A stretch of 64,000 nt of DNA from Paramoeba atlantica (Eukaryota; Protista; Discosea), in assembly GCA_977017575.1 (NCBI GenBank), contig CDRNVI010000020.1, positions 496,001 through 560,000 of the forward strand, written 5' to 3'. Position numbers and translations under genes: made by a program. This document shows, in pieces, positions 13 to 60,766 of the stretch (the stretch's first letter is position 1; each line of letters opens with the position of its first letter). Under the pieces are notes generated by a model. That model was not told the DNA's origin. It worked only from the letters and a program-made list of their open reading frames with translations, and ran no database searches.

Positions 13-164
13 GGCGCCGCTTCGCGGCGCCTTTTTTACGGACAAACATGTTCATATGCAGAATTAGTTCTATTTAACGAGTGCGTTGTTGAACAAACAC
101 CGCTAATCTCGAGAAAATGGGAATAAAGAACCCGCAAAAAAATGCGGCGCCGCTTCGCGGCGCC
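13..164. repeat. Two GGCGCCGC-TTC-GCGGCGCC hairpins (13-31, 146-164); GCGAAGC mini-hairpin on the minus strand
   Basis: Perfect 8-bp stems with a 3-nt loop, read directly; the same motif recurs across the window. Confidence 0.9.
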
Positions 165-174
165 ATATTTTGTT

Positions 175-221
175 GGGGGGGCACAATAACGGTGGTCGTT
201 TCCACTTATTGTGCCCCCCCC
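175..221. repeat. Back-to-back MITE ends (GGGGGGGCACAA-TA ... TA-TTGTGCCCCCCCC)
   Basis: Matches the TIR family YTGTGMCCCCCC seen at 4624, 5280 and 19686. Confidence 0.6.
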
Positions 222-389
222 TGCACAATAAGTAGCTCTAGGTAAAATAGCCCGGAACAGGGTTTAATTTCAAAATTATTGATTTAAGAAAGATTTTTTT
301 GTAAAATATTTTACCCAGTACAACCAGTGCTACCCAGTGTTACCCATAGAAACTTCTAAAAAGGCGGACTTGCAGAGGGTCCAATAGTG

Positions 390-1211
390 AAACTTGCAAA
401 TGGATCATCGCATGTTGTGCGCAATACGAAAAAGAACGCGCCGCGAAGCGGCGCGAAATTTTTTTTACCCTTTTTGCAAAGCAAAGTTATTATACCTAGG
501 GATACTTATTATACCTAGGGACACTTACAGTGCTCGCAAAACTTAGTAAAACTTTTATTGTAAAATAATAAAAAAGTTTTACTAATTAAAAATTCACTAA
601 TTTTTGTTTTACTAATTTTTGCACTGCCCCCAAAAAAATTGCCAACTTGATAAAATCAATTTTTACAGAAACGGTATTTCTGTCGTTTGAGTGGGCTGTC
701 TCCTCTAAGGTCGGCGTTAGTACCATCTGCAAAATGGTAATGCTAAGGCAGACTGCGAGGAGGTCCCGACCATGCTTCATCATGCTGAGTGTGTCAGGCT
801 TCAGTGAAGCGTATTACAAGGAAAATCCCCCAAAAAGGGATTGACTTCGATGAAATTTCAGCTCAAACTTTCGTCGAACATCTTCGCCCCGAAAAACACC
901 ACGAGTGTGTTCGAATAACCAATTCTTTTGCTCATCTGTTAAGGAAGTTCTGGGGGGCGTCATGTTAGACGAAGCACTTATCAGTTTGCTGAGCAATATC
1001 ATTTCTCCGATGTCGTGCGACATAGTAATCTGAAAACTTTTCGTAAAAAAAATAGAATTCCGAAAAAAAGAAAGTAAGGTGTAAAACCTGAATTTCGTAA
1101 AATGTTTTACTAATTAAAAATTTACTATTTTTTGTTTTACGAATTAATGTTACACTAATAATTGTGTGCACTGTATTATACCTCCTAGGCATAATAACCC
1201 GGACGGTGGTT
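390..1211. mobile_element. Right part of an AACC-TIR MITE, split by the 528-1173 insertion
   Basis: 390-527 plus 1174-1211 align with 26671-26828 (hairpin, TTATTATACCTAGG subterminal repeats, end TAACCCGGACGGTGGTT followed by TA). Confidence 0.8.
528..1173. mobile_element. Internally deleted Tc1/mariner/pogo-type element with CAGTGC ends and TA TSD
   Basis: TA-CAGTGCTCGCAA ... TTGTGTGCACTG-TA. A second copy lies at ~55788-56559. A minus-strand remnant MTPPRTSLTDEQKNWLF resembles a transposase N-terminal HTH. Confidence 0.8.
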
Positions 1212-1685
1212 TAAAAGGGGGCCCCGGTGGTCCAAAACTGAAAACAAAATTCAAAAAATTCAAAACAAATCGAGCGCGGGGAAGTGGTAGAGTAGGCCGC
1301 GACGATGATTTTCCACCCCCCACCTGGGGGTACCCCCTGGTACGCGCAGGAGGGGTTCGACAAGGTCAAAATTTTCCAAAATTTTAGGATGGCCAAAAAA
1401 ACAATTTGACTCAAAAAAAAGTAAAAAAATATTTTCCAAAATCTACTACAGAAATCTATAGGTGAGATGATAATTCATTTTGTATATCTGCGAAACAAGA
1501 CCAATAAGTTCTTTTTTGAGTGCAGTGTTTTTTGAGTGAAGATTTTAGTGGATATTTTTTTCCTATATCACTATTTTTTCGCTTGTCACTCTTTAAATAG
1601 TATTTTTTTCTTTTGCTGTTTTTTGTTGGAAATTCAACAACTCAGTGGAGAGTCTGCAGATGGGCTAGGTTGGGGTTCCAAAAAA

Positions 1686-1735
1686 ACCTACACGAACCTA
1701 CACGGATCTACGCGAATTCACACAGACTTACACAG
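1686..1735 (+). repeat. Degenerate 10-bp tandem repeat ACCTACACGA x5
   Basis: Read directly; same unit as 5041-5140. Confidence 0.75.
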
Positions 1736-1792
1736 AACCACTTTTTTTCCTATTTCTAGTAGTTTTACTTTAGTTCATTTTTAATATTTTTC

Positions 1793-2055
1793 TTTTTTAG
1801 GCTCTTCGGTAAACACGGTGGTTGTTTTCAACTTAGAAGTCACTCATGCTGCGAGCTTCGCGTTGAAAACTACCCCTGCGAAACTAAAACTAAACTTAGG
1901 CCCTGCGAAGAGCCTAAAAAAGAAAAATTGGTTACGAAAGCCGAAAAAAGGGAAGGATTTGAACCAAAAATCACCTATTTTTAGGTAAAAATGGGGGCGT
2001 TTTTGCGTACTTTTGCTCTGAGAGCGCTAAATCCAATATTTTCGTGTAGGAACGA
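1793..2055. mobile_element. Foldback unit (TTTTAGGCTCTTCG...CGAAGAGCCTAAAA) plus shared tail
   Basis: Homologous to 55364-55468, 60769-61130, 62291-62398 and 62493-62880. Confidence 0.8.
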
Positions 2056-2227
2056 TCATTACCATCATAAGGATTATTAGTATTGTGCCTAAACGGGTTT
2101 ATTCCTTCAGTTGTCTAACTGTGAAAGTGATTTTCTTCTCTTTCCTATTTCATTACCAGTCTATTTAACATACCTATACCTTGATAACATACCGGGGGGT
2201 ATGTTAAATGGGGTATGTGGTTTATGT

Positions 2228-2417
2228 TTTTTTCATCAAAATATCAAGCTCCAAGCACACACAAGACTCGAACGAGCACAAGAGCAAAGATCGCGCCGCG
2301 AAGCGGCGCGAAAGAATTTTTGGTCCTTTTCTGCTAATTTTTTTATATTCCTATACCTCGTTATATTCCTATACCCTCTTAATATTCCTACCAGGAATAT
2401 TAACCCGGACAGTGGTT
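2228..2417. mobile_element. AACC-family MITE right part with GCGAAGC hairpin (2291-2311)
   Basis: Ends TAACCCGGACAGTGGTT followed by TA; the interior aligns with 60643-60766. Confidence 0.7.
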
Positions 2418-2604
2418 TAATTCGGTCTACTTTACCTGAGGGGCTGCGGGTTATTATTCCGAAACACCGCGAAACAGCGGTTTGTTTTCCAGTCTTGCGC
2501 AGGTGATGAAAAGTCTGAAAATTCATGTACAAGCTCATAACATGCACTTAATAATGTCCGTTATGTTCCCTTATGCTCTGTGTTAACGTGTATGATGGCA
2601 TATC

Positions 2605-3711
2605 ATGTGCAAAGCTTATAACCACAATAATATTTGGCTTATTTGTGAAAATCTTCGTATCAATATACCTTTCTTGAGCCTTTTAATGTACGGAATAAGC
2701 CATGAACAGGTTAATCAAGTGTATTCCGAGCTACAGCGGGTTCACGGCGCCGTTATAGGGGAAAAAGACATGCGGCGTCTAAAATCTTCCCTATGCATGT
2801 GCGCTTTAAACTGCACATGGGAACAATTGCATGACCTCCAGGGGCTTTGGACGAGCCCGAATGATCCGCCAGTTTCTATCCGCGCCTTGCGTGAAGATTT
2901 CTCGCGCACAGCAAAGTTACTTTCCTCCCCGCACCTGGTGAACCCAAACTTGCGATTTCAGCATGGTATACCGTGGCTTTCGGATGTGACATGTATCGTA
3001 GATGTCACCACGATTCCTTGCCGAGCGCGCAAGAAGCACACTGTTTGGGACAGCACGCGTGGTGAGTACGTGCAAAAAGACGCAACTTACCCTGGAAAGC
3101 ATCATGAGCATTGTTTTAAAGTAGAATTTTGGATGACGTTGGCCGGAGTTCCTTTCTTTTTTCGAGGACCTGTGAATGGAACTATCCATGATGCGAAAAT
3201 TTACAGTACTACTACAACTGACAAGACTTCACTTTTCAGTCATCACAAAGACGAAATGTTTCTTGGAGATCTTGGGTATATAGGTTGCAATCATTGTTTC
3301 GTGCCATATAAAGAGTACAATAAGAAAAAACTCACAGAAGAAGAAAAACAAGTGAACGCACGATTGTCTCTGGTGCGCTCCCGCATAGAAAGATGTTTTT
3401 CTTTTTTTGATAAATTTCGATGTTTTCATGGGACCGATCATGATATCGGATGGGTTAGAAATGCAGTGCAGATTGTTTCAGTAGTGATCTATGGAATACT
3501 AGCATCTGGCCCTCAATATGATGTAGATAACACTGTTGTTAAGTCATTGCAAGTGTTAGATGAGCCATCCGAGTGCTGGTGCAGTCGGGGGTGTGGTGTC
3601 GTGGAGCCGATAGGAACGCGCCGTGATTTTCTTAAGGAGCACATTCATCATGTGCCGTATAACCCAAAGAAGCCAGGTAAAGGTAAGAAGAAGAAGGAGT
3701 TGTCTGAATAG
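2605..3711 (+). CDS. PIF/Harbinger-type DDE transposase (DDE_Tnp_4-like), 368 aa
   Basis: Motifs CIVDVTTIPC, YPGKHH, GTIHDAKIY, FLGDLGYIG and RSRIERCF; basic C-terminal tail. Confidence 0.9.
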   Translation: MCKAYNHNNIWLICENLRINIPFLSLLMYGISHEQVNQVYSELQRVHGAVIGEKDMRRLKSSLCMCALNCTWEQLHDLQGLWTSPNDPPVSIRALREDFSRTAKLLSSPHLVNPNLRFQHGIPWLSDVTCIVDVTTIPCRARKKHTVWDSTRGEYVQKDATYPGKHHEHCFKVEFWMTLAGVPFFFRGPVNGTIHDAKIYSTTTTDKTSLFSHHKDEMFLGDLGYIGCNHCFVPYKEYNKKKLTEEEKQVNARLSLVRSRIERCFSFFDKFRCFHGTDHDIGWVRNAVQIVSVVIYGILASGPQYDVDNTVVKSLQVLDEPSECWCSRGCGVVEPIGTRRDFLKEHIHHVPYNPKKPGKGKKKKELSE

Positions 3712-3742
3712 AAATATGATCGTATTTAAGTTTAATAAGATA

Positions 3743-3869
3743 ACTACACCATACGAATAGATGTCGCTACGAATAAAATAACTACAGCTTACTACACCAT
3801 ACGAATAGATGTCGGCACGAATAAAATAACTACAGCTTACTACACCATACGAATAGATGTCGACACGAA
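3743..3869 (+). repeat. 48-bp tandem repeat x2.6 between the two transposon ORFs
   Basis: Units start at 3743, 3791 and 3839 (ACTACACCATACGAATAGATGTCG...). Confidence 0.9.
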
Positions 3870-3928
3870 AATTTTTATTTTTCACATTTTTTAGCATTCT
3901 TTTTAGTATAATATTCCTTCTGTAGAAT

Positions 3929-4558
3929 ATGGACGCAGAGGACGACAAATCTTTAAAGAAAAGGATCCTTCGTGAATTTGAAGACGACGAGGTGGCAGAA
4001 GATGATATCATTGAGCTCGTCGTTAGCTCGACGAAAAAGGTTTTCACGAAACGCGTAACTGTGCTTGATAAGCCAGTCCTCCTGATTTCTCCTGAAGAGC
4101 TTGGTGAGAAGGTGACAAGCATCATGGAACGGGTAAACAGGGCCCTGGAATGTTTTTCTGTGGGAAAGAGGAGCATTGGTAATGTTCCTGTTGGCTCCTC
4201 TATCCTTCGTCGCACAGTTCTTCTTCTGGTACAGCACCGAGAACATCTCCTACTCGATGTGCGTCCACGTGAACTGTACTTTCTGGGTGAGGTTACCCAA
4301 GACATGGAAAGCTACCTTGAGGAGCAACCATTATATGCTCCGCGACGAAAAGGCGAGGTGGGAGACTTTGTCGAGAGCTTGTGGCGCTCGATCACGGGAC
4401 AACGGTCTCGCGCTTGCGCAGCATGGCGCCAAAAAAGGATGAAAGCTTCCACTTCCCTCGAAGCAAGCGCTGAAAGCAGCCAAGTGGAAAGTGACCAAGT
4501 GGAGAGCCCTGCAAAGGGCCTATCGGGCAGGGTCATTCGATTTCCCGAGCTCGAGTAA
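3929..4558 (+). CDS. Transposon companion protein (ORF2), 209 aa, unrecognised fold
   Basis: Intact ORF inside the TIRs, preceded by a T-rich tract and AG. PHIS elements typically carry a second ORF. Confidence 0.7.
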   Translation: MDAEDDKSLKKRILREFEDDEVAEDDIIELVVSSTKKVFTKRVTVLDKPVLLISPEELGEKVTSIMERVNRALECFSVGKRSIGNVPVGSSILRRTVLLLVQHREHLLLDVRPRELYFLGEVTQDMESYLEEQPLYAPRRKGEVGDFVESLWRSITGQRSRACAAWRQKRMKASTSLEASAESSQVESDQVESPAKGLSGRVIRFPELE

Positions 4559-4623
4559 AACGCTATGGGGCGAAAAAGGGAATACGAAGTGCGAAAGTGT
4601 AAAGATCAGCACTAAGTACAGTA

Positions 4624-4711
4624 CTGTAACCCGCCTTTAATATACACCTCCCCCCCAAACCCCCCTATCATAGAGACAAAACGTATTATTCTACGTTAAA
4701 GGGGGTCACAG
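4624..4711. mobile_element. 88-bp MITE (CTGT..ACAG, TA TSD) nested in the Harbinger-group element
   Basis: TA-CTGTAACCCGCCTTTAA ... TTAAAGGGGGTCACAG-TA. Confidence 0.7.
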
Positions 4712-5040
4712 TATTTGAAATGTGTTCAACTTTTTTAATATTTGCGAATGAGTGCTGAAGATCAGTTTTGAAATGTATAGTACATTAATATCTTAATCTT
4801 TTTTATGCATGGAGATCATCGCGGCATACTCCCGAACTTTGCCCCCCTCGAGTGCCTACTCTGCTTTCATTCATAGGTTATTTCAAATAAAAAATAGCTA
4901 CTATTTCCTTTTTGACTTACCTAGTGTTGAAACGCCGCGAAACAGCGTGAAACAGCGCTTTACGTCATCCGCAGCCCCTCACCTACATGCAATCATCCTA
5001 GCGGCCGAGCCATTGAACCATCTCAAAAAATCTCAAAAAG

Positions 5041-5140
5041 ACCTACACGAGCCTACACGAATCTACACGGATTACCACGAACCTACACGTACCTACACAG
5101 CTCGTCACGGACCAACACGAACTTACACAGACCTACAGCA
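5041..5140 (+). repeat. Degenerate 10-bp tandem repeat ACCTACACGA x10
   Basis: Read directly. Confidence 0.8.
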
Positions 5141-5279
5141 TACTCTCCAGTACAATTGACGAAAACTGTACACTGATGTTAAGAAGCACTTCTTTCTTGC
5201 CCTCTTTAGGTCCATCAAAAAAATTATACTAAAAGTTTTAAGCAGTACAAGGCGGAATGTAGCTTCCATTTCTCTCATA

Positions 5280-5586
5280 CTGTGACCCCCCACTTTATAC
5301 TTCGCTGGTCAGACCCCTCCTTTATACTTTGTTTTCTGTGTGCCCCCCCCCGAAGGGGGGATGTCTTTTTTTTCCGTATTTTTTCAATTTTTTAAAAAAA
5401 ATGCAAGAACGCTCTAAGTCTCCCCTTCTAGGAATGGAAGGTGATATAAAAGGAAAGACAGAAAAACTGGATGAGCCGCGCCGCGAAGCGGCGCGGCTCT
5501 TTTTTACAGCGGAGAAAAAATTCAGGCCCCCCCATTTATACTTCGTTACTGCTCGAAATGGGCGAAGTATAAAGGGGGGGGCACAG
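5280..5586. mobile_element. 307-bp MITE with ~26-bp TIR, TA TSD and a 12-bp-stem GAA hairpin (5473-5499)
   Basis: TA-CTGTGACCCCCCACTTTATACTTCGC ... GCGAAGTATAAAGGGGGGGGCACAG-TA. Confidence 0.9.
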
Positions 5587-5890
5587 TATTAGATTTCTGC
5601 TGTTGATATTCTACTTGTATTAGATTCTACTTTGCCTAAAATGTATTTTTTCTCTTTTCTAGTCTTGCCCCATACAAACTTTTCCTTTGGTTTATTTACA
5701 ATATGAATTTCTAATTCGTGTACTTGGCTGCACAATGTGATGCTTTTTGTAACAAACTATTCCTACGCAGCATAACGGGGGTACGCTTCTAATTATCATT
5801 AGCGATGGTAATTCTTTTTTATTTAAATTTTTACTACTAGAAACCCGTGCAATTGTTCGTTTTCTTTACATTTCCTTTTCATACATTTTC

Positions 5891-7048
5891 ATGCGTTCTC
5901 TCGTATTTATTATCATTGCTCTCTGTACTGGTGTGACGTACACATCCGACGTGGAGACACACATTCGTCAGCGTCTTGAAGCATCGATTAGAGAATTTAC
6001 TACCGACCTGTGTGTTAAAGGTAATTTCGGTACTGGAAAATTTAGTTGCTGTTATTCGTATTTTCAGAACACAACAAGAACTGTGATAGATACTTACACA
6101 GAACACGTTGAATTGTTTTGGGATTCAGCTCGTCCAGGATATCGTACATTTTCTCAATCGTACGAGAGTATTGTCTCTGGTACCCCTCAATGGGGAAAAT
6201 TGCCGCCAACAGTGCAAACCATTTCCCTTGCAGATAACAATTTCAATGGCGCCATTCGGCTTTATAACGCATCCCTCCTGACGAGATTCAATGTCTCAAG
6301 TAATTCCTTTTGTGGAAGTGTAGAGTTCCTCTCCCACGCCCCTAAGCTACAACATGCAGATCTCAGCAACAATAGGTTTAGCGGATCAGTAATTTTTTCA
6401 GAACTTCCAAGCTCGCTGATTTCATTAAATTTGTCAAACAATAGGTTTGTTCGCTCTGTGGACATGACGCTTCTTCCCCAATGTCTTGAATTTTTGGATT
6501 TAAGCCAAAACGAATTCGATGGTTCGATTGAGTTGGATCGCCTTCCTTCTTGTCTTGCTACTGTAATTCTGTCGTCTAATCATTTTACGGGTCCACTGGA
6601 TTTCTCAAATTTGAGTTCGAATATTGCTTTCAACAAGACCCACGAGTGTTGCTTTGCCATCTCAACTTCTCCCAATTCACAATTTGCTACTCTTCCCCCG
6701 ATAATTGAGAAGCTGGACATCAGTAATAATCATTTTTATGGTCCTTTAAACTTACGAAATTTGCCCTCGTCTTTACGATACCTGAATTTGAGTAGCAACC
6801 GCTTTAGCGGAGAGCCCTCGCTTCCTACAACGCTGTCTTCCCTCTCTACGTTAGATATGAGTGAAAATCGAATGCATGGACACGTCAGCTTGCTTGCCTA
6901 TGGTGATGGGACAAAAGTGGACATCTCGAATAATTTTTTTACAGGATACTTGAGTCCTCTTTTTAAGCTTCATGAAGAAACCAAAATTCTTCCTCAAAAT
7001 CATATTCGTAGACTGGCACTGTGTTTTCCGCCATCCATAGAAAAGTGA
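5891..7048 (+). CDS. Secreted/surface leucine-rich repeat protein
   Basis: Hydrophobic signal peptide; repeated LxxLxLSxNxFxGxxxLxxLP. Confidence 0.85.
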   Translation: MRSLVFIIIALCTGVTYTSDVETHIRQRLEASIREFTTDLCVKGNFGTGKFSCCYSYFQNTTRTVIDTYTEHVELFWDSARPGYRTFSQSYESIVSGTPQWGKLPPTVQTISLADNNFNGAIRLYNASLLTRFNVSSNSFCGSVEFLSHAPKLQHADLSNNRFSGSVIFSELPSSLISLNLSNNRFVRSVDMTLLPQCLEFLDLSQNEFDGSIELDRLPSCLATVILSSNHFTGPLDFSNLSSNIAFNKTHECCFAISTSPNSQFATLPPIIEKLDISNNHFYGPLNLRNLPSSLRYLNLSSNRFSGEPSLPTTLSSLSTLDMSENRMHGHVSLLAYGDGTKVDISNNFFTGYLSPLFKLHEETKILPQNHIRRLALCFPPSIEK

Positions 7049-7666
7049 CCGGCATTTCAGTATCCTTATTTTCTTGCCCATTATTCCATAGTCAATTCAG
7101 AGTGCTTTTTCTTGCCGATCTTTCTTTAGATATTTAATTTTTATATTCGCCCTGTTTATTCATTTTCTAATTCGCACTATCCAATCATAGCCATATCATA
7201 TTCATGTGCATATCATATTTTTTTGTCTACACTTGTGTGCTGTGCGGTTTTCGTCTTCAAAGTAAATTTGGTTCAAGTAGTGTAACTCGGCCTTAAACAA
7301 CTCAGCCTTCTTTTATCTTGCCTGAATCCTACTCTTTATTTTAGATATTTTTACATATGTTATGTATACATTACCTTGATATAAAATATCACCTCTACAT
7401 GGAATCAAGGATTACACGATACGCACATTCTCTTTTTTGTTTAAAGTGCTGGCTTTGTGTGCATAAACCCTTGCCTTCGTTCATAATTCTAGATTATGCG
7501 AAGGTGCATTTACGTGCTTTCCTCATCTTCCTGAAGTGCCACAAGATCTACCTTGATTGCTTTGACGCAAGGGGGACATTAGTTCTAAAACAACAGAATT
7601 AAAAACGTGGAGCTGTTGAACTTCACTATTAAATTAATAAATGAATTTAGTATTTCTTTTTTTTAA

Positions 7667-8929: not shown

Positions 8930-9119
8930 AGAGAGGGAATAGAAGAGAAGGGGAAAAAGTGTATTTTGGTGCGGAATTCCATATTTCTGTATTGAATAGG
9001 TATGAAATATGAGATAATGGTCTATTTTTCGTCAATATTTGTAGGTGACAGGGTTAACTTTCTTTTTTGATAAAATTAATACATTTTCTTCATTCTTAAT
9101 TTACACACGGAGAGAAGAC

Positions 9120-9602
9120 ATGGACTATCTTCGTTCCATGAAATTTATGAAGCGGAAAGAGGAAGCTGATCGTTTACGTAGACTTCGGGAGGCCGCGAAG
9201 CGTGGTCCTGCTGCACTGCAGCATGAGGAACAGCAGGAAGGTTCTTCCTCCACCACCCATTCGAAATCCTTTAGCTCTAATGCATCTTATCGTATGGGTG
9301 AAGTCCGCAAACCCGCGATAAGTCTATCTATTGGTTCATCATCTTTGAAATCAAATAGTGACGAACATGTTTCGGGAAGAAATGAGGTCGAAACCGTGCT
9401 GGTTCGATACGATCGTCGATTCTCGGAAACTCTGCATCCTCACGGTCGAAAACAATTCTTAAATTTTTGTTCTCTTCCAACAAATGCGAAGCCAAACACC
9501 GACTCTTCAGATGCTACTCCGCCCACGTCTCCTATGGAAACGTTAGAACTTGGGGACACTCACACTCAGTCTGATGAAATTTCTGATGTAAGCAAAGAGT
9601 AA
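9120..9602 (+). CDS. MPP6-like exosome cofactor (tentative)
   Basis: N-terminal LRSMKFMKR and internal GRKQFLNF resemble the two conserved MPP6 motifs. Confidence 0.45.
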   Translation: MDYLRSMKFMKRKEEADRLRRLREAAKRGPAALQHEEQQEGSSSTTHSKSFSSNASYRMGEVRKPAISLSIGSSSLKSNSDEHVSGRNEVETVLVRYDRRFSETLHPHGRKQFLNFCSLPTNAKPNTDSSDATPPTSPMETLELGDTHTQSDEISDVSKE

Positions 9603-19220: not shown

Positions 19221-19253
19221 GGAGCCGAACATGCTAACACCAGATTATGAACG

Positions 19254-19306: not shown

Positions 19307-20343
19307 GAGCAGAGTAATTTGTGTCCAAATCGAGGATAGGGGGGCTGGTCCCCCTTTTCTCACCCTCCTCTATCCACCCTACCCCGGACACCATAAAGAA
19401 GGGAGAGGCGAAGGTTGTAAACAACCCCCGCAATAAACCAGTCTAGTTTACCATACCTACCGTAATATGCCCCCGTGTGTATACCTCCGTAATATACCGG
19501 GGGGTATATTGCGGTGTCCACTCTGGTTTAATATCCCCCCTCCGACACAAATGTCAAAACTCTCAGAAAAAGTCTGACGAAAAGAGCATTTACAAAAAAA
19601 ATAAAGAATTTACAAAAAATAAAGAACCTCTTTTGCGCTTTTGGATCCAAAACTTGACTTTTAATATACCCATACCCTTGTAATATTGTGACCCCCCCTT
19701 TAATGTAGACGCAATTTCGTTTTTTGTCTCTATTAAAGGGGGGAGATGAAATGAGAGTCCGAAACACGAAAAAAAAATCGGCGTCGCTTCGCGGCGCCTC
19801 AGTTTCAGAAGCCTTTGCATATTTAATGGTCAGTTCGTTTTATTTCTCCTTTCTAGGTGGCGTGGGACACGTGCCTCGTACAATCCTATTAAGGAACAAC
19901 GGACGTTCGAGAGCTGCGGTTGAAATTCCGCACTCTGCCTTCCAAAACATTTTACACCTAAGCCAAAAATTATTATCGCTAAAATTCATGGCACAAAAAT
20001 TACTGTTTCTTTAATTTTTTTTAGTTACAGTGACAGTTAATACGAGTGGATTATATTACGGTTATTTTTAATTAAGATTATTTTTAGCCCCGAGAAAAAA
20101 TACTTCTTTTTCATGTCTATCACTATCGACCTCACTTTCATACGAAACACAAACCTTTATAAAATGATCACAGACGAATCCAGTGGCTTGGGCGCTTAAA
20201 AGTTACTCAAAAAGTGTGTTCAAGAATTATTAATTTACGAGTGGATTATATTACGGTTAATTTAATTAAGATTAATTTTAGCCAAAAATAACCTTAAAAG
20301 TGTAATTAAATAATACCGCAATTAAATATAACACTGTATCTCC

Positions 20344-25374: not shown

Positions 25375-26140
25375 GTGGAAGAGCAGTGGGGGGAAGGCGT
25401 GGGCGCAAAGAGAAAACCATTCGGGAGAGTAGTATCGTAACGTTCGTTCGTGGAGTATCAAGTATCTAATAGATAAGATTCTCTTTGGACATCGTTCGTT
25501 TGCCAGCGTTTTTCATATGAAGTATGAAAATACATTTTTTTTTTGTTTTTTCTTTTCTAAGTGCTTTGATGGCACTCAAGACTCAAAAAAATTTGACTTT
25601 TATGAATACTTTTGAATCTTTTTCGTGCATTTCTTTTAAAAGTTAAATTTCCTACTCATTTTCATCCTTGCATTGGATTTTTTCCCTCTTTTTCTTCCTA
25701 CTCCCATCTCAACTTCTCTATCTCCATCCCAGCATCACACACTCACCCCCTCTCTCCCCAGGTCCTTTAAATTCATCCGCCTCGCTTAACCCTTCCTCTC
25801 TCTTCCCCTGTGTAACCGAGCCCTACACCAAACGAACCGTACCCAAAACAGAGTATATTTTACACCATTATCTCCCTACTCCTCCTTTTAGTCTGCTGTC
25901 AGATTCTCTTATACGGGATCAAACCTGGAAAAGTGCGGCAAAGCTCTTCGCTAGGGGAACGAGGTCTCTCGAATTCCCAAAAATGAGCAAACCCGGAGAA
26001 AGAATCAAACTTTCCGGTAGGGTGTGGGTTAATTTAATAGCTATAGTTTGCGGTGGTTGTATAGCTACCGCTCTACCCTCGATTATTGAAAAAAAAGTGA
26101 ACAAAAACAGTGAAAATATAAAGAGGAACACAGTAATATA

Positions 26141-26828
26141 AACCACCGTCCGGGTTATTATACCTAGGGACACCTATTGTACCTCCTAGGTATAATAAGT
26201 GTCCCTGGGGTCCTTATTATACCTCCCCCCCCTACCTTCAGAGGCAGGTGCAGAACTTACAGGACCGTAAATTTTGATGTTGGAGGGCTCTAAAATTTGT
26301 AAACCTTGGCCCATTTTGGAAAGTTATAGCGCATTCGAGAGCTCTCGAACAGGGCCCGTGAACGCGCAGGCATGGAATCTTCGTTGTTTGGATTTTCGAA
26401 TGCACGTAGATCACTTTGTTTTTTGGTAGACAAAATCTTGCATTTTTCACAATTTCCACTCACTGCGCGTAAATTTCAATGTTGCGTTTGATGGAAGCTT
26501 ACCAAGAAATCAGATTAACGTTGTCAAGAGTTTTGACCAGTTTGGGTATAGTAACCACGAAAATACATGTATTCGTGGCGTTTCATATTCTTTTACCCCT
26601 GAAGCCCCAGAAAACAAACTTACCTCCACACTCGCACACGTTCCCCGAGACGTCCACAGGCGCAAGAGGAAAACTTGCAAATGGATCATAACATGTTGTG
26701 AGCAATACGAAAAAGAACGCGCCGCGAAGCGGCGCGAAATTTCTTTTTACCCTTTTTTCAAAGAAAAGTTATTATACCTCCTAGGACACTTATTATACCT
26801 CCTAGGTATAATAACCCGGACGGTGGTT
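26141..26828. mobile_element. 688-bp AACC-family MITE, TA TSD, hairpin at 26718-26736
   Basis: TA-AACCACCGTCCGGGTTATTATACCTAGG ... CCTAGGTATAATAACCCGGACGGTGGTT-TA; the interior (~26235-26345) carries a piece of the Tc1 TIR seen at 58560. Confidence 0.9.
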
Positions 26829-27089
26829 TAATAGAGGAAAAAAATATCAAAGGGATCCCGGTGGTCCAAAACTGAAAAATCAAAAAAATGGGGGGTCCAG
26901 GGGATGACCACGAATCAGATAAAAGGATAAATCACAAATCGGATAAAAAAGATAATGAGCACAAATCGGTGGTCATTATTTAAAAAAATATTCTTTTTTA
27001 CGAGCACTGTAACGTTTCTTTGGCATGAAACAGAGAAACGAAAACAAAAGAAAAGAAATCCCTATTCTGGTACATTCTCACCTATCTTA

Positions 27090-34575: not shown

Positions 34576-36075
34576 TCAATTGCGCGGCCCTATTCCATAG
34601 GATGCCAATGGGGCAATGTGCAATTCTTTGGCGTAATTATATTGCTCTCTACGCTTACGTGTCATTCCGCGTAGGCGGTGGCGCAGATTGGCAATATCTT
34701 TGGCTTCGCGTCGCTGCATTTCGAGGTCCCCACTCGATAGTATTTTCCGAGGGCGTCCGCGTTTTCTTCTTTCACTAGGTAAATTGGAGGTAGCTATCTC
34801 GTCGTTTGGTATAGGCAATGGAGTTTGCTCTTGATCATCCGCGTCAACGAATATGTTGTCCCCTGATGATCCTAAGTGAGTTTGTAAGTTTTTATACGCA
34901 TCAAGGCGAGAAGAGCGCGTTTTTACTTCACCAAACAAAACCTTGGGTATCTTTCTGTAACTTCCCAAGAGGCAAGAATTTGCGCAGGAGAAATTTCATT
35001 CATTGCTTGGATGATATAGGAAACCTTTTTTTCGCGACAGAGAGTGCGGGATGTGCTTACCATATTAGATACTGCCGTGCTGTTCTCAGAGCGCGAAAAA
35101 ATACGGGCTATATCACTGTTATAAAGTTGCACAGCACGCTCTTTTAACCCAGAAATAATGAACTGATCCGCTGGCCGAAATACGTGAGTCATATTTTTCG
35201 GGACGCAAACTACTCCACAAGACGCATCCTGAAGGATAGAATCTGTACTACCATGCTGGGTCGCTTCATCAATGATCAGAAGAGCCCGAGCTTCCGGTTT
35301 CTTTTGCGCTTCACGCTCCAAAGAAAGTATTTCTTTAAAACGCGCTAAAAAAGTCGACCAAGTTGAAGAATCTTGGAAATGAGATTCTTTTCTGGCACAT
35401 TGAAGAACGCGTGGGTCATTGCCTGTGTTTACAAATACACGACTTGTTCCTTGGTAAATGAATTGCAACATCTTAACATTTCCTGCCGCAGATGACAAAA
35501 CATTGCAAGTGAATCCCTGTTTTTCTTTACGAACAGATATTGTACGCGATTCTCCGCGATCAATGCGCTCCCATGTCCAAGTAGCGTTCGATCTGCCTAA
35601 TCCAAAAAAAAAATCCAAATCACTCCGGATTGCTCCGGATGGTCACTGGCAAGCCAGACCCTCCACAGACAGATTTGGAGGTTCCGAGGCCGACGTCCTC
35701 TACCAGTTTCCGCTTGTCCAAGGCGGCACCAAAGTGCTGTTGCCAACACGCTGCGTCGACGAATTGTACGTCAACACGGCTCACCCAAGAGGTGTAAGCC
35801 GGGTAAGGGAGCTGGTTCCCTGAGGGGAGTGTCCGGGACGGTCCTCCGAGTACTGGGCCTAGTCGGTTATCAGCCCAGCCTCTCAGAGTGAGGCCGCCGG
35901 GAATATTGCGATGAGCGGGTTTGAACTCGCCATCTGAGCACCACGTGCTTCAAAATCTGCCTAATCCCAAACACACAAAAAATTCGTCAGAATTGAATAC
36001 AAACTCTTTATCGCATATACCTTTGAAGACCTCAAGTTGCGAGAAAAATTTCTTAGATGATTCGATTACTATGCT
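34576..36075 (-). pseudogene. pogo/Tigger-type (DDE_1) transposase, interrupted and frameshifted
   Basis: FVFNSDEF (~35975-36000), LLIIDEATQH and VPKNMTHVFRPADQFII; C-terminal RKRGRPRK AT-hook in another frame. Candidate element end TA-CACTGCCGCCAAAA at 34288. Confidence 0.85.
35604..35954. mobile_element. 351-bp SINE-like insertion with 13-bp TSD
   Basis: ATCTGCCTAATCC at 35591-35603 and 35955-35967; A10 at the left end; removing the insert restores the pogo reading frame. Confidence 0.85.
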
Positions 36076-36079
36076 TTTT

Positions 36080-51818: not shown

Positions 51819-52521
51819 CTTACTTAGGCGTCTGGTTTTTTGTGCAAATTTTATTTTTGTTTTTTAGCTCACATACACTGTACTTTGTATTCGTTTCATG
51901 ATTTGGTTTTACGACACAAAATTGTGAAGCGAGTTGATTTCTTTGAATCCATCCACGATCTGGACAGCACTGTATGTATGGCGCAACAGTAGAGTAAGTG
52001 CTTCGTACGAGCATGGAAATTATTTTTTATGCACCGGCAAATTATAAATATGAATGCTTTTACATTGCGCGTAAGCATGGATACATGAAGTAGACTTAAT
52101 CTGTGTTTGTGCGCAAACTGGTCTGCAAAGATGATTCTTTGCAGCACTGTATACTTGGGCTCTCTTGCGTTAGGTCGGTGTTTTCTTGCGTTCTTTGTTT
52201 CGTTTCTTTTCTCGTCGGGTTTGTGGACGAAACAAAAGAGGTTCACAATTCACACTACAAAATATCGTATACACCACGGGAAAAGTATCTTCTCAAAAAC
52301 GGTTGGCCTAAAAAGTATTATCTTTTTTGTGGCGACCATTTTTTAATAATTTTAACCTCTTTTTACTTGTTAACGAGTTTCTGATTAATTTTGATTCTAA
52401 ATAGTTCTTTATAATAAGATTTTTGTTAGTATCGACCAAATTTTTGTTGTCGATACCAATAAAGTATAATACTCTTTCCATACAAACTCTTCATTTTACC
52501 TTCTTTGGTGGTTTTCATCTA

Positions 52522-55266: not shown

Positions 55267-55363
55267 GACGCATATTTCCTCATGCAGCCTATTCTGCATG
55301 CAGTTTTACTTACGAACCATTGCTCCTCCTCTGAATACCGTGGAAACATCAATTAAGAATTTC

Positions 55364-55468
55364 TTTTCTAGTCGTTTCGTTAAACACGGTGGTTCTCAAC
55401 GTAGAAGTCACTGATGCTGCGCGCTTCGCGTTGAAAACTACCTCCACGTTTAACGAAGTGCCTAAAAA
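55364..55468. repeat. Foldback unit, degenerate copy
   Basis: Core TAGAAGTCACTGATGCTGCGCGCTTCGCGTTGAAAACTAC. Confidence 0.8.
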
Positions 55469-55787
55469 GGAAAAATTGTAAAAACATCAAGAATAATTGA
55501 AGAAGGGTTTTCATCTAGGGTTGCGAAAATTACAGCGCTCGCAAAATTTTGTGTGACTTCTAAAATTGTTGCACAATAAATTGAAGTAAATGTCTTCGAA
55601 AAATGGAGTCTTTAAAAAAGGGAAATTCAAAAAAAGGAGGGTCTTCAAAAAGGATTGGATTTCCAAAAAGGAAAGGTCTTCAAAAGAGGAAAGGACTTCG
55701 AAGAAGAGAAACCTCTTCAACAAAGGAAAGGTCTCCGAATTTGGAAATGTGTTTTAAACCAATGTTCAGCTTGCCATACCCCCGGTA

Positions 55788-56559
55788 TAGTACTTTTAGT
55801 ATTAGTAATACTAAAATTAGTAAAACTTTTATTGTAAAATAATAAAAACGTTTTACTAATTAAAAATTCACTAATTTTTGTTTTACTAATTTTTGCACTG
55901 CCCCAAAAAATTTGCCAACTTGATAAAATCAATTTTTACAGAAACGGTATTTCTGTCGTTTGAGTAGGTTGTCTCCTCTAAGGTCGGCGTTAGTACCATC
56001 TGCAAAATGGTAATGCTAGGGAAGACCGAGAGGAGGTCCCGACCATGCTTCCCCATGCTGAGTGTGTCAGGCTTCAGTGAAGCGTATTACAAAGAAAATC
56101 CTTACCAAGAATATCCCCCAAAAAGGGATTGACTTTTACCCCCTCCCACACAATGTCCCTACATCAGTATTTTCTTAAATATGAAAAAAAACTCTTAAAT
56201 ACAAGAGAGCGATGTTTCGCGTTCGCGGAGCGGAGAAAGTCTTTTAAAAATGGGAGTATAACGAACAAGAAAGTCAGAGATTCAGAAAAAGATCAGGAGC
56301 GGGGAAAGTAATATGTGTCTGTAGCACAGAGTAAAAAACACCCCAAAAAAATAATATTAATAAAAATCTTGCTCACAGAAATCTTGCTCGCTTTCGTGCG
56401 ACATAGTAATCTGAAAACTTTTCGTAAAAAAGATAGAATTCCGAAAAAAACAAAAAAATGTAAGGTGTAAAACCTGAATTTCGCAAAATGTTTTACTAAT
56501 TAAAAATTTACTAATTTTTGTTTTACGAATTATTGTTACACTAATAATTGTGTGCACTG
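55788..56559. mobile_element. Second copy of the 528-1173 element with a different interior, preceded by an AACC-family left end (~55757)
   Basis: 55817-56100 aligns with 541-829; 56398-56559 aligns with 1018-1173; right end GTGCACTG-TA. Confidence 0.8.
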
Positions 56560-57145
56560 TATCACCAGTAAAAGTCATAGAAGTGAAAAAACGCGATAAA
56601 TAGTAAAGAAAACAAACGAATAATGCTCTGTAGGGTTATGATCTACGTGGGCCACCTCGAACAAGAAGTCGACATCACATGTTGTCTGTCTGAAAAACCA
56701 GGGGGGGGGTATGCTATCGACCCTGGGTCACGATACCATACCCCTCCCCAGGTATGGTACCAGGTCAAAGGTATGCAAACCGGACCCCCGTTTACATTTG
56801 GACCTCACCTCGGACAAGGGGCTTGGCTTTTATTTTTCCCCGCAGCGCATCGCTGATCAAGAAGAAATTCGTAGAAATCGGCGTATAATAACGTTTGTGG
56901 AGACGAAGGGACAGGAAGAATTTTCTCCAGAAAGTGCAGATCTGCCTTTCGTACCTTAGTCCTCCCTTCATTACTCTATGGGTGCTTAAGCAAATATTTA
57001 TCGTTAACATCTCATAATTGTCATCTTCGTTTACCCGCAATCTATCCTTACAGTGAAACAAATTGGTTCATCCTATCAGCTAAAGTGTTGTATATCACGT
57101 CGTTCCACCTACCCTTTCTCATTAATTTTTATAAATATAAATATA

Positions 57146-57458
57146 CTATCCCCCCCTATTTAATAGGACTCCAATTTTGGGCAAAAGGCCCTAATAAAGG
57201 GGGGGCACATGGAAAATAATATGAAAGAAAAAAATCGGCGCCGCGAAGCGGCGCCTTTTTTATCGTTGTGAAACAAGGTCCTACTCCCTTTTGATACACT
57301 TTTGGTTGTTGGGGTAGAAATGGAAAAACAATCTGCCGCTTCGCGCCGGATTCGACAATTTTTTGGCACTTTCCCTGAAATATTTTTTGTGGCCTTCCAG
57401 ACAAAATGGCCCTATTAAAAGGGGGGTGACACGTAGCCCTATTAAATAGGGGGGATAG
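57146..57458. mobile_element. 313-bp MITE (CTATCCCCCC ends, TA TSD) with hairpin at 57237-57255
   Basis: TA-CTATCCCCCCCTATTTAATAGG ... CCTATTAAATAGGGGGGATAG-TA. Confidence 0.9.
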
Positions 57459-58559
57459 TAATTATAAATTTTCATTTTTGTTATACCGTGGAAACATTAA
57501 TTAAGAGACACATTAAATAAGGGAACATCAATTAAGGGAACACTAATTAAGGGAATAATTGTTTTTCGTCAATTTTTGGCATTTTCAGGCAGTTTATAAC
57601 TAATATTTATTTTTTCCACCCATGGCCCAGGCACCCCCAACCCTCAGGATATATATTGTTTTGAGTAGTGAATTTTTCTTGAAATGAAGTTTACATTGCG
57701 CCCCAAAAAAGGGTTTTCCCAAATAGTAAAGTGTTTTTTAGTAGTTACCTTTTTTTAGAGTTTTTCTCTTTTTCAAGAATTTTTGTCTAAAAGAAATTGA
57801 TTTCATTTCATCTAAAAAAAATCGCATACAGCTTGCATTGGAAAGCGTTGTTCAAGACTCCAGCCCAGTTGTTTTTTGATTATACGTTTTCTTTTTTTCT
57901 CTGTGCTTCAAATACAATTGATTGCCCAGTTAGTAAAGTCCCAAAAAACGGTTTTCCCAAATAGTCAGGCTTCTTTTTAGTAGTTACCCAAAATCTGTGG
58001 TAACTACTAAAACCTTTACTATCTGGGTGCACTGTATATTTTTTGTGCTTTTTGTGCTTTGTAAAAAGAATAATTTTGATATTCAACAGCTGCTTTTCAC
58101 CTCTAAATATGTTTAAAATAAAACTGCAACAATTTACAGTTTACAATTATTCATCGTACTTATCTGATGATCTTGGGCTATTTTCAACTTGATTCTCATA
58201 AAACGATTAAGGGAACATTAAATAAGGGAACACTAATTAAGGGAATAATTCTTTTTGTAAATCATATTCCCTTAATTAGTGTAACCCCCCTTGAAGCGAA
58301 GGTCTTGGGCGACCTAAATTCCATAGAGACCCCAAAGCAGTACCCTTCTTCTCCTAGAGGAAAGGGTCATGATGACACAAATGGCTTGGGTCCGAACAAA
58401 GCTTCTCGCGAATGGGAAAGAGTTCATGGTACGTTTCACTCAATTTTTTTTGTGAAATGAGTGACTAAATGAAACTTTTCTTCAATGGCGTGTTTTTTTG
58501 GCAAACAGTAAGAATTGGCAAAGTTTGGTAAAAAAGTGAACATATGTTGCGGCAACATA

Positions 58560-59811
58560 CAGGGGTGGGCGCCTTCAGAGTGGGGGGGTCTAAAATTCGT
58601 AAAACTTGACCAATTTTGGAAAGTAATAGCGCATTCGAGAGTTCTCAAATAGTCTGGTGTAATGGCAACATCCGTTTCCCGTTTTTAGACATTCGAGATA
58701 AATGACAGAAAAACAAGGAATTTATTTTTCCCCGAAGATGCAATTTTTCAGTTTTTTTGGCTTTTTTTAGTTTTTTTGCGCCGTTAATGCCTCAGAAACG
58801 TGTACGATCGCAAACATCACGGTTTCCCTTCCAGAGAGGGTTTCAGTGTTCCAGACGCACTTTGGCTCGAGCTTTGAAGCCCGATATTATCCTCCGCGTA
58901 GTTCAGCGTAAACCACGACTAACCCAGCAGCATAAAGACGTTAGAGTCCGATTCTGTAAGGACATGTCGGGCTGGAGCGAACACCAGCTTGATAATATTA
59001 TTTGGTGTGATGAGAAAAAGTTTACCTGCAAGAAGTCTACCAAAAACACCTACCTTTGCCGACGGTCCGACCCTGTAAAAGAGCAGCTAGGTGAGCTGGA
59101 AGCGTGGGTAGGGGGCGATGGTATAATGGTGTGGATGGGGGTAAGCATAAAGCATGGATTTCATCTGCACATTTTTCCTAATAGAGATGAGCAGGGAAAT
59201 AGAGTTACTGTGAACGGGGCTGTTTTCGAAGCTGCCATGACCAAGCGTAATGGTCTTTTGAACTACCTACACAGGCACCGTGCAGTTGTTGCTATGGACA
59301 ATTGCCCTGCGCACAACTTGGCAAGGCGTACTTTTCAGCAGCAAAACGTGCGAACGCTCCCCTGGCCCGCAAAGTCACCGGATCTCAACCCCATCGAAAA
59401 CTTGTGGAATATCATGGATCAGCACAAGGATCGCATGCGACCACGCAATCGCACAGATCTCCTCTCTTCTATCGAGAGTGCATACGAGGCACTTCAAACC
59501 GATCTCAAAAGTACTTGCGTGAAGACCATAAAGAGTGTCTCCAAGCGCTTTCAAATCGTTATTGAGAAAAAAGGGGGAAATTGTGGGTACTGAGATTATT
59601 TTTGGAAAAAAAGGACTTTTTCGCTTAAAAAATAAAGTTGCAATTCGTGTTTGGGACCATTCTAGCTTTCTTTGATTCCCGTAAACTTTCGCAGAGTGCT
59701 TTTTACGATTACACCAGACTATTTGAGAGCTCTCGAATGCGCTATTACTTTCCAAAATTGAACAAGTTTTACGAATTTTAGACCCCCCCACTCTGAAGGT
59801 GCCCACCCATG
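58560..59811 (+). mobile_element. Tc1-like DNA transposon, 1252 bp, ~105-bp TIRs, TA TSD
   Basis: TA-CAGGGGTGGGCGCCTTCAGAG ... CTCTGAAGGTGCCCACCCATG-TA enclosing a transposase ORF. Confidence 0.95.
58787..59593 (+). CDS. Tc1/IS630-family transposase, DD32E, short N-terminus
   Basis: KPRLT, IIWCDEKKF, IMVWMG, AMDNCPAH, WPAKSPDLNPIENLW and KGGNCGY. Confidence 0.92.
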   Translation: MPQKRVRSQTSRFPFQRGFQCSRRTLARALKPDIILRVVQRKPRLTQQHKDVRVRFCKDMSGWSEHQLDNIIWCDEKKFTCKKSTKNTYLCRRSDPVKEQLGELEAWVGGDGIMVWMGVSIKHGFHLHIFPNRDEQGNRVTVNGAVFEAAMTKRNGLLNYLHRHRAVVAMDNCPAHNLARRTFQQQNVRTLPWPAKSPDLNPIENLWNIMDQHKDRMRPRNRTDLLSSIESAYEALQTDLKSTCVKTIKSVSKRFQIVIEKKGGNCGY

Positions 59812-59814
59812 TAT

Positions 59815-59873
59815 GTTGTGTCAACAAAAGTCGTGTTAATCCCAGAAATTAACATGACTTTTGTTGACATAAC
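59815..59873. repeat. Hairpin with 22-26-bp arms abutting the Tc1 right end
   Basis: TGTCAACAAAAGTCGTGTTAAT-CCCAGAA-ATTAACATGACTTTTGTTGACA. Confidence 0.85.
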
Positions 59874-60042
59874 TTAATTTCCCCCCTGTATGCCCCCCAT
59901 GGACCCCCCCATGGACCCCCCCATGGACCCTCAACAAAAAAAATCTCCACAAATATTTGTGCAACAAAAATTTGTGAATTTATTATTGTGCAACAATTTC
60001 AAAAGTGGCACAATAAAAAATTCACAAATTTTTGCGAAAGCT

Positions 60043-60372
60043 TTATCTGTTTCTCTTCTTTTTCCCCTTGAAGTAAACGCTCGATGCACGCTTTTCTTCT
60101 TCCGTAGTGCTAAAACACACGTGCGCCAGTCCCTTTTTTGATACGATTGTTATGCAATTGATTTCACCATAAGAAGCGTAATGCTTGGTAAGGTCTTCTT
60201 TAGTCGTAGAGGAGGGAAGGTGTTCTATTGTGATTGAGCGCTCGTCATACTCTTCGCGCGCAGAGCGCACAACGTGCAGTGATTCTAAGTAATCATCTCT
60301 TTTGCGCTTTGTATCTCTTTCCTTGTCGGAAATGTCGTTACCATTGGTTGATTGATTCTCCGCCGAAGTCAT
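60043..60372 (-). CDS. Single-RRM protein or fragment on the minus strand
   Basis: RNP2-like SITIEHLP, TTKEDL..HY..YGEI and RNP1-like KGLAHVCF. Confidence 0.65.
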   Translation of the reverse strand: MTSAENQSTNGNDISDKERDTKRKRDDYLESLHVVRSAREEYDERSITIEHLPSSTTKEDLTKHYASYGEINCITIVSKKGLAHVCFSTTEEEKRASSVYFKGKKKRNR

Positions 60373-60476
60373 AATATACTCGAAGAAAGTTTTCAAAAAA
60401 ATCACTCTAAGTCTAGAAACATTGACCATCGTTTTTTGTAAGACCATGGTTTTTTGTAAGACCATCGTTTTTTGTA

Positions 60477-60766
60477 AACCACTGTCCGGGTTAATATTCC
60501 TATACCCTCGTATTATTCCTACCAGTAATATTAAGTGTCCCAATGGTGCTTAATATTCCTACCCCCCCTCTCCCTGACACCTACCCCGTCTTTGCTTGAG
60601 ATCCACAAAAATGATCCTTCGATATTCCCTTTTTGGGTGATTTTTTCATCAAAATAGCAAGCCCAACGCGCACACAGTTCCTAAAGGACCAAAATCGAGC
60701 ACAAGAGCACAGACCGCGCCGCTTCGCGGCGCGAAAGAATTTTTGGTCCTTTTCTGCTAATTTTTT
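60477..60766. mobile_element. AACC-family left end plus hairpin-bearing interior (hairpin 60715-60733)
   Basis: TA-AACCACTGTCCGGGTTAATATTCCTATACC; interior homologous to 2228-2345. Confidence 0.7.

Follow-up and report, generated by a model that had tools for sequence, protein, structure and literature searches.

A recurrent GC-rich hairpin in the arms of TA-flanked miniature inverted-repeat elements of Paramoeba atlantica: a candidate subterminal cis-module

The window analysed here is a 64-kb stretch of Paramoeba atlantica DNA (64,000 nucleotides; contig CDRNVI010000020.1, positions 496,001 to 560,000), in which one + strand gene follows another. The encoded proteins include a class II aminoacyl-tRNA synthetase, a homologue of Sec61/SecY, a member of the tubulin-tyrosine-ligase family and an SPX-EXS protein. 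Searches of the entire window with Rfam at gathering thresholds and with ARAGORN found nothing. Between these genes a short GC-rich hairpin recurs about once per 10 kb. Its core is a 17-mer (GCGCCGC-GAA-GCGGCGC, written GCGCCGCGAAGCGGCGC), and with a complementary flanking pair it forms a 19-bp palindrome with an 8-bp stem and a 3-nt loop. The 17-mer is exact at positions 14, 147, 438, 2293, 5478, 26719, 57238 and 60716 and carries one mismatch at 19781; these nine copies (8 exact) compare with 0.01 expected, and this number was reached by none of 100 shuffles. An earlier note on this DNA had listed nine palindrome starts, which are all matched by 17-mer positions (Table 1), and a degenerate copy near 57335, which is real and has about 5 of 19 positions changed. 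The stem is generally 8 bp long, with a 9-bp and a 12-bp form (Table 1), and DNA folding predictions assign about -12.5 kcal/mol to the form with 8 bp and about -20 kcal/mol to that with 12 bp. One side of the hairpin is A-rich (43% A) and the other T-rich (45% T); these flanks contribute about 1 kcal/mol.

When every perfect hairpin of the window was considered (stem of 7 bp or longer, 60% GC or more), no other sequence recurred, so the palindrome is one sequence family and not an assortment of unrelated stems. Full copies are without exception intergenic, and the earlier remark that none was seen in a housekeeping coding sequence holds for them. The shorter 9-mer CGCGAAGCG has 14 occurrences in the window against 0.25 expected, and one of these, at 9194, lies within the open reading frame (ORF) 9045-9602.

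Two of ten window ORFs were on record by exact look-up, in an ENA assembly, which became the source of extra loci (L numbers denote sequences outside the window). L085 and L089 are cuts of one contig (ctg3765l) that is allelic to the window, with 99.66% identity for L085 and 96.7-99.0% for the blocks of L089. Seven more loci were retrieved by following paralogues of the Harbinger transposase and a small ORF that had been called over one hairpin-bearing repeat. The extra loci amount to about 136 kb, or 199,586 bp together with the window, and this sample holds 16 independent copies of the hairpin (at most 2 mismatches) and 3 decayed ones. Three contig ends rich in transposable elements (TEs; 53.5 kb in total) have no copy, while about 7 would be expected at the density of the window. 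An arm-swapped palindrome, GCGGCGC-TTC-GCGCCGT, is present at L093:9120-9150. Logan unitigs and contigs were compared over window positions 1-6000, and no joint skipping a hairpin is listed among the Logan contigs there.

An initial self-comparison gave only about 30-37 bp common to most copies, and anchored extension with alignment resolved more. Lineages have the outer flank of the hairpin in common but not the inner one: families are homologous from the hairpin out to the element end, and this homology ceases at the inner edge of the hairpin. In ten copies, the common flank on one side consists of GAAA, a T-run, ACCC or GGTCC, a further T-run and subterminal repeats of the TTATTATACC, TTATATTCC or TTATTGTGCC type, and terminates in AACCCGGAC(A/G)GTGGTT followed by TA. 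The other copies lie in ends of MITEs (miniature inverted-repeat transposable elements) that consist of TA, then CTGTG, CTATC or TTGTG with a C-run, and then a terminal C-run...G-run foldback. The arms are therefore of two types, with AACC...CCGGG ends and with CTGTG/CTATC plus C-run ends, and the hairpin is the only sequence common to these two types, whose terminal inverted repeats (TIRs) cannot be aligned. From outside in, TA is followed by a TIR peculiar to the family, which comes with either subterminal repeats or a C-run/G-run foldback, and then by a linker rich in A/T and the hairpin. In the 11 arms in which the hairpin lies inside a TA-flanked TIR end, its start is offset by 98, 99/100, 108, 106, 92, 91, 89, 88, 87, 94 and 64 nt; that is, the offset is 87-108 nt in 10 of 11 identifiable ends, with a full range of 64-108 nt.

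The host elements have TIR pairs, are about 310-920 bp long and contain no long ORF. TA is found on both sides of L089:5157-5509, L090:11868-12786 and the window elements at 5278-5588, 26139-26830 and 57144-57460, and on the single visible side at window positions 2418, 19684 and 60475 and at L091:2426, L091:5120 and L091:15483. The complete AACC-type elements, at window 26139-26830 and its second full copy L090:11868-12786, each have 20-bp TIRs; in the window element, a hairpin is present at 92 nt from the right end and none in the left arm. The MITE at the window start is about 350 bp long and runs off the window, but it is whole in the allelic L089:5157-5509, where the hairpins lie 98 nt inside the left end and 99-100 nt inside the right end. 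The truncated Family I arm is interrupted at about 529 by another TA-inserting MITE. All hosts thus belong to a single TA-flanked superfamily, in which two arm types are built on a common plan, and the earlier description of them as unrelated repeats has to be given up. The coordinates in the window are collected in Table 1.

Table 1. Hairpin copies and their host elements, in window coordinates.
Feature	Position	Strand	Description	Context or basis
AACC-type MITE, G-run/TTATTGTGCC subfamily, right part	1..266		right TIR ends 264, TA 265-266	
Hairpin	13..31		8-bp stem, TTC on + strand, 8th pair G:C	inner end of MITE left arm
Hairpin	146..164		8-bp stem, TTC on + strand	inner end of right arm, same MITE as hairpin 13..31
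Truncated Family I arm	382..528	+	inner flank, hairpin, T-rich linker, TTATTATACCTAGGG subterminal repeats	
Hairpin	437..455		Family I arm, GAA on + strand, 8th pair C:G	alignment
Family II block	2223..2419	+	right AACC-type end AACCCGGACAGTGGTT, then TA	
Hairpin	2291..2311		9-bp stem, GAA on + strand, Family II arm	106 nt from TA 2418-2419
CTGTG/C-run MITE	5278..5588 (element 5280-5586)		TA both sides	hairpin 87 nt inside right end only
Hairpin	5473..5499		12-bp stem; loop GAA 5485-5487	TTC in allelic contig
TTGTGA/C7 MITE arm	19684..19800	+	TA 19684-19685, C7...G7 terminal foldback, A-rich linker	hairpin 94 nt inside
Hairpin	19780..19798		one stem mismatch	also kept in allelic contig L085
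Complete Family I AACC-TIR non-autonomous element	26139..26830	+	about 690 bp, TA both ends	
Hairpin	26718..26736		Family I, GAA on + strand	
CTATC/C7 MITE	57144..57460 (element 57146-57458)		TA both sides	hairpin in each arm
Hairpin	57237..57255		GAA on + strand, 8th pair G:C	91 nt inside left end
Degenerate hairpin	57329..57347		opposite arm of the MITE of hairpin 57237..57255	111 nt inside right end
Family II element	60475..60769	+	TA 60475-60476, AACC-type left end	right arm cut at 60770 by foldback unit
Hairpin	60715..60733		Family II	loop TTC in flanks where hairpin 2291..2311 has GAA

Two further observations touch the arm plan. At L088:15204-16427 lies a Tc1-like (DDE_3) element with 124-nt TIRs that begin TA-(TA)CAG-G9 and differ from those of the hairpin MITEs; the TIR length is about that of a MITE arm plus hairpin. 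About 80 nt inside each end, this element has its own 7-bp palindrome, AACGAGA-GA-TCTCGTT, with a chance probability of roughly 0.04, which may be a structural analogue of the hairpin position and is taken as a lead only. In addition, a low-GC, eukaryote-looking metagenome contig (JAAUXV010201344.1; L065:1110-1170) carries the hairpin beside CCCTATTATTGCCCCC, which resembles the TTATTGTGCC/C-run arm motif, and it may come from an environmental relative with the same MITE arm.

Across five AACC-type arm lineages, whose pairwise arm identity is 33-65%, the stem is invariant in 14 of 14 columns, compared to 18 of 100 arm columns (Fisher p = 1.5e-9), and the hairpin is better conserved across families than the TIRs. 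The earlier proposal that the hairpin is a module in its own right is supported by this excess over the adjacent MITE sequence, as well as by its being all that the two unalignable arm types share. A hairpin simply inherited within a single ancestral element that aligns over its full length, the outcome named earlier as counting against a module, is thus not what the comparison shows. Over 11 independent contexts, information content peaks at the 14 stem positions (2.2 bits), drops to about 1 bit at the 8th pair and the A-run/T-run, and is close to zero more than 15 nt away on either side. Families agree in all of the inner 7 bp of the stem, while the 8th pair may be either C:G or G:C; it mostly tracks the arm type, AACC arms having C:G and C-run arms G:C apart from one exception in each direction. 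Because the 8th pair is complementary in 16/16 copies and never mispaired, it argues for pairing, or for correction of the palindrome on its own template, and against its being simply an uncontacted position where a protein binds.

Within Family II, the stem varies much as its surroundings do, with 3/14 variable columns in the stem and 13/89 in the flank (p = 0.45); those in Family I are 0/14 and 24/69, respectively (p = 0.008, a value inflated by indels). Individual copies decay after insertion, as seen in the Family II variation, in the degenerate copy at 57329 and in a half-deleted hairpin of the element at L091:16765, which belongs to the same MITE family as window 19684-19800. In this element (L091:16840-16880), an 11-nt deletion took the left arm of the palindrome, and TTC-GCGGCGCC followed by T8 remains. 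Since the stem is invariant across lineages yet inserted copies decay ordinarily within a family, the alignments point to a probable constraint on the propagating transposon lineage and not to selection at each host locus. A function for the host at each site, such as the origin or nucleosome signal suggested earlier, or also a terminator, fits poorly with decay at the flank rate, the half-deleted copy and the degenerate copy.

The same data bear on whether the hairpin is a plain inherited relic, that is, ordinary MITE sequence that looks conserved only through the youth of its copies. The Family II comparison, in which the hairpin is no better conserved than its flanks, would fit this explanation, and 6 of the first 10 copies are in families with a long right flank common by descent. 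It is nevertheless very unlikely, given an invariant stem in arms as divergent as those of the five lineages, a conservation exceeding that of the TIRs and an 8th pair that changes only in a compensated way.

In perfect inverted repeats with short spacers, the spacer is inverted by template switching or cruciform processing, and the stem is left untouched. The hairpin at 5473-5499 with its flanks and the allelic counterpart are identical in 108/111 columns, the sole difference being the loop, which changes from GAA to TTC. Logan unitigs from two independent short-read runs stop at 5484 and resume at 5488, which is consistent with a bubble exactly at the loop. Similarly, the paralogues at 2291 (GAA) and 60715 (TTC) have inverted loops within homologous flanks, and the hairpins at 13 and 146 both read TTC on the + strand, so that one of them is inverted relative to the arm symmetry. 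Read toward the MITE end, the loop is GAA in 11 copies, TTC in 4 and TCC in 1 (GGA on the other strand; L091:15550). These comparisons imply at least five independent loop inversions, which are consistent with a palindrome that, in the nuclear genome in vivo, folds or sets off template switching. Because the loop inverts, its orientation cannot carry strand-specific information.

This free flipping of the loop weighs against a signal in RNA. In such a reading, a GC hairpin followed by a U-run in polycistronic transcripts would be a terminator-like, pausing or processing element, or a polypyrimidine tract plus AG would serve trans-splicing or polyadenylation of the neighbouring genes. The hairpins do rank highest, on both strands, among terminator-like sites; their outer flank is rich in pyrimidines (45% T), and in bacterial metagenome contigs the same 17-mer forms the stem of perfect palindromes that resemble bidirectional terminators. 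A metagenome scan for the hairpin with A/T-run flanks returned 36 contigs, almost all with single perfect palindromes of this terminator-like kind, and no homology of these 36 contigs to the window beyond the hairpin was found by BLAST and tblastx. However, an RNA signal is decidedly unlikely: the copies favour neither orientation with respect to the + strand genes (5 versus 4 by loop orientation), those within a family decay at the flank rate, and no Rfam family matches the window. Moreover, the part conserved between families lies downstream of the hairpin, toward the MITE end, whereas the terminator of a conserved transcript would have its conserved part upstream.

Based on the results presented above, we give a probability of about 0.5 to the palindrome being the innermost conserved, structure-prone subterminal cis-module of the approximately 110-125-bp arms of one superfamily of TA-flanked, non-coding TIR elements (Tc1/mariner-like MITEs). 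The module would be retained by selection on the transposon lineage, in that the source copies that are still amplifying keep the hairpin, which may then be a cis-acting arm element that benefits mobilisation. By analogy, the hairpin could serve as an architectural site or as a docking site for a cofactor or the transposase at the inner end of a long inverted repeat. Its extrusion or folding may lead to template switching, and we propose that the loop inversions, and the derivatives that keep the arm exactly up to the hairpin, arise because folding provokes template switching or abortive gap repair.

Several points weigh against such a module. The hairpin is present on only about 10 of about 32 credible superfamily ends, several elements have it in one arm only, and substitute hairpins were sought in the hairpin-less arms and none was found. 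With only about a third of the superfamily arms carrying it, the hairpin is not needed by every family and is not generally required. An autonomous element with AACC or CTGTG/C-run TIRs was sought around the pogo, Tc1 and DDE_1 genes in about 200 kb, and none was found. The loop inversion between contigs is based on two assemblies and indirect unitig evidence. The sample of about 200 kb was picked through transposase and repeat-ORF paralogues and is non-random for the genome. Finally, the identity across families could be a product of recent exchange between families by template switching or gene conversion.

The last point can be extended into a reading in which the hairpin, with its A/T linker, is a passively shuffled or selfish module that moves between MITE families during the repair of excision gaps, uses G/C and A/T runs as microhomology and benefits neither MITE nor host. 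It would account for a hairpin shared by arm types with unalignable TIRs, for junctions at homopolymer runs, for the presence of the hairpin in about a third of the arms only, and for loop inversions, which indicate template switching or cruciform processing at the hairpin. We still regard it as rather unlikely. A hairpin-minus copy of the same outer flank (R1) was sought in about 200 kb and none was found, which also disfavours the mini-element inserting into MITEs that the earlier note had considered. The near-constant offset from the end in both arm types would not obviously be kept by random exchange, and exchange could explain the invariance of the inner 7 bp over such divergent arms only if it were very recent as well as very frequent. 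As regards mobility of the MITEs themselves, comparison of the window with the allelic contigs L085 and L089 revealed no hairpin-bearing MITE that is present in one and absent from the other; other elements do differ.

The earlier note had also proposed a recognition hairpin for an HUH nuclease, which would act on single-stranded DNA in a REP/RAYT-like or Helitron-like system, and a search for the corresponding Rep genes. The genome indeed encodes a protein with Helitron_like_N and PIF1 matches (L087:2491-6366), and the hairpin is short, GC-rich and sharply bounded on one side. On the other hand, its hosts have TIRs and TA duplications, the hallmarks of cut-and-paste transposition. The hairpin is followed by no CTRR end and shows no signature of insertion between A and T; GAAA or CGA and a T-run come next, and homology continues for about 90-108 nt to the TIR and TA. 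The Helitron-bearing locus (20.7 kb) is one of the three TE-rich loci without a copy, and the GC hairpin downstream of its Rep/Hel ORF differs in sequence. No RAYT-like gene is among the genes called in the extra loci of about 136 kb (about 200 kb with the window), which is a weak negative. A target of an HUH nuclease is therefore extremely improbable. A broader eukaryotic counterpart of REP has a slim chance of being correct; in this reading, a sequence-specific hairpin module that is carried, exchanged and maintained across otherwise unrelated MITE families would itself be the unit of selection and would be recognised by a protein of its own, such as a domesticated transposase, an HUH nuclease or a cruciform-binding factor of the host. 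Taken as a whole, the earlier interpretation is partly supported.

The Helitron-like protein is a 1291-aa ORF on the - strand, and an adjacent ORF matches DUF6570. It lies inside an element with apparent TIRs and a target-site duplication, which would be unusual for a Helitron. Beside a T8 run at L087:922-946 is a separate GC hairpin with an 11-bp stem (GAAGGGCCCGC-ccg-...); it was considered as a candidate Helitron 3' hairpin and rejected, because its sequence differs from that of the MITE hairpin and the surrounding element has TIRs and a target-site duplication. At about 1436 of the window, the allelic contig (L089:6653-8843) has a 2.2-kb insertion that is absent from the window, with subterminal inverted repeats GAGGGAGATACG / CGTATCTCCCTC and an apparent AATCTA duplication. 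With 98% identity over the common ends, it looks like a deletion derivative of the L087 element and would then be a recent insertion polymorphism. L091:2319 and L091:5211 were rejected as the bounds of a 2.9-kb element, the intervening ORF resembling, by eye, a leucine-rich-repeat host gene and being unrelated to the ORF beside the Helitron protein.

Other repeats had been connected with the hairpin in the earlier note. Its shorter form was placed in the foldback units, and the 9-mer CGCGAAGCG is indeed there, at 55422, 60826 and 62561 and with one mismatch near 1853, but the palindrome itself is absent. The 9-mer is part of CGCG-CTT-CGCG at the spacer/arm junction of one high-copy family, and it is probably a coincidence and not a relative of the hairpin, since a single chance 9-mer (0.25 expected per window) multiplied by the copy number of the family suffices. 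The foldback units (TAGGCTCTTCGTTAAACGCGG... and its inverse), about 100 nt long, are extremely abundant and lie at 1790-1890, 55360-55477, 60770-60880, 62286-62404 and 62495-62616; in bin 1801-2000, the summed Logan word depth is about 800x that of single-copy contigs.

The Harbinger motif CCGC-GAAACA-GCGG, put forward as a possible relative, is present at 2467 and 4935, but with its 4-bp stem and 6-nt loop it has no alignable relation to the 19-mer and is regarded as unrelated. This subterminal motif (CCGCGAAACAGCGG; 2467-2480 and 4935-4948) has the same (+) orientation at both ends and is not inverted as the TIR symmetry predicts. The Harbinger element (2437-4984) is a separate, later insertion next to the Family II block: the paralogue L092:9909-10120 abuts the equivalent of 4984-5149 directly, L092 has a paralogous empty site (10120/10123), and Logan contigs join 2433 directly to 4981. 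There is also a Harbinger allele with an internal deletion, in which window 3197-4510 is missing (L089:10593/10588), and another copy of the left end at L091:10225. Elsewhere, L087:400-745 is a second copy (95% identity) of window 35609-35954, a 351-bp insert resembling a short interspersed nuclear element (SINE-like) that interrupts a pogo transposase in the window.

These results provide a concrete candidate cis-element for transposition assays or protein pull-downs, namely, an internal GC mini-hairpin that is the best-conserved part of the arm and common to two arm types with different ends. Invariance across lineages set against decay within families separates constraint at the transposon level from that at the host level without experiment. 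The allelic loop inversion is a ready marker for the rate of folding or template-switch events; the hairpin site also breaks short-read graphs and could mislead variant callers. DNA transposons in kinetoplastids were first reported only in 2021 (PMC8101967), and no description of kinetoplastid MITEs was found in the literature.

Among known systems, the d(GCGAAGC) mini-hairpin occurs at single-strand origins of phages and plasmids and at N4 virion RNA polymerase promoters (review PMC13037366). The GCGAAGC core and GAA loop are the same, apart from the one GGA copy here; those hairpins are single functional sites on single-stranded phage or plasmid DNA, whereas here the core caps an 8-12-bp stem in transposon arms and the loop orientation varies. 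A scan of viral contigs for the 17-mer gave 48 singletons, all in unrelated phage contexts and none with A/T-run flanks. In about 20 low-GC phage contigs (L003, L005, L007, L011, L014, L016, L017, L019, L021-L023, L027, L030, L031, L033, L040-L043, L045 and L047) the 17-mer is followed by an ACAACCT-RY-RRTTG-like sequence, and in some of them another hairpin with a GAA loop (CGCGCGAAGCGCGCG) lies immediately upstream; such sites may represent N4-type hairpin promoters.

Bacterial intrinsic (bidirectional) terminators can have the 17-mer itself as their stem, bordered by an A-run and a T-run, but the copies here belong to a eukaryotic nuclear genome, have imperfect A/T extensions and favour neither strand, and their conserved sequence is not on the side where a terminator would have it. 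REP/BIME and REPIN-RAYT sequences are likewise short, extragenic, GC-rich palindromes that are dispersed, high in copy number and sometimes paired; in contrast, neither a RAYT gene (in the extra loci) nor a GTAG-type head was found here, and the copies are not free-standing and lie at a near-fixed offset in TA-flanked TIR MITEs. In a prokaryote genome scan, the exact 17-mer was single in all but one of at least 120 prokaryotic stretches among the matches listed. The 3' subterminal hairpin of Helitrons resembles the present one in being GC-rich and marking the limit of what dissimilar non-autonomous elements share, and differs in its CTRR terminus and insertion between A and T, where the hosts here have TIRs and TA duplications and the Helitron-like locus lacks the hairpin.

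Hairpin-loop inversions and quasipalindrome template-switch mutations are known from chloroplast non-coding DNA, bacteria and human mutation clusters. There too the spacer inverts and imperfect stems are perfected in a compensated way; the mechanism does not differ, and what is new here is confined to its being seen between alleles of a nuclear MITE. The proposed cis-module has a parallel with long-inverted-repeat Tc1/mariner elements of the inverted-repeat/direct-repeat (IR-DR) type, such as Sleeping Beauty with its HMGB1 cofactor, which have inner repeats or enhancer sites, and with the Drosophila P element, which has 11-bp internal inverted repeats. In these elements, a conserved cis-sequence lies about 100-200 bp inside each cut-and-paste end, is distinct from the terminal repeat and is kept in non-autonomous derivatives; the present MITEs have TA target duplications. 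Their inner element differs in being a perfect GC palindrome with a 3-nt loop, shared across differing TIRs and often confined to one arm, and the docking role suggested for it is drawn by analogy with these systems.

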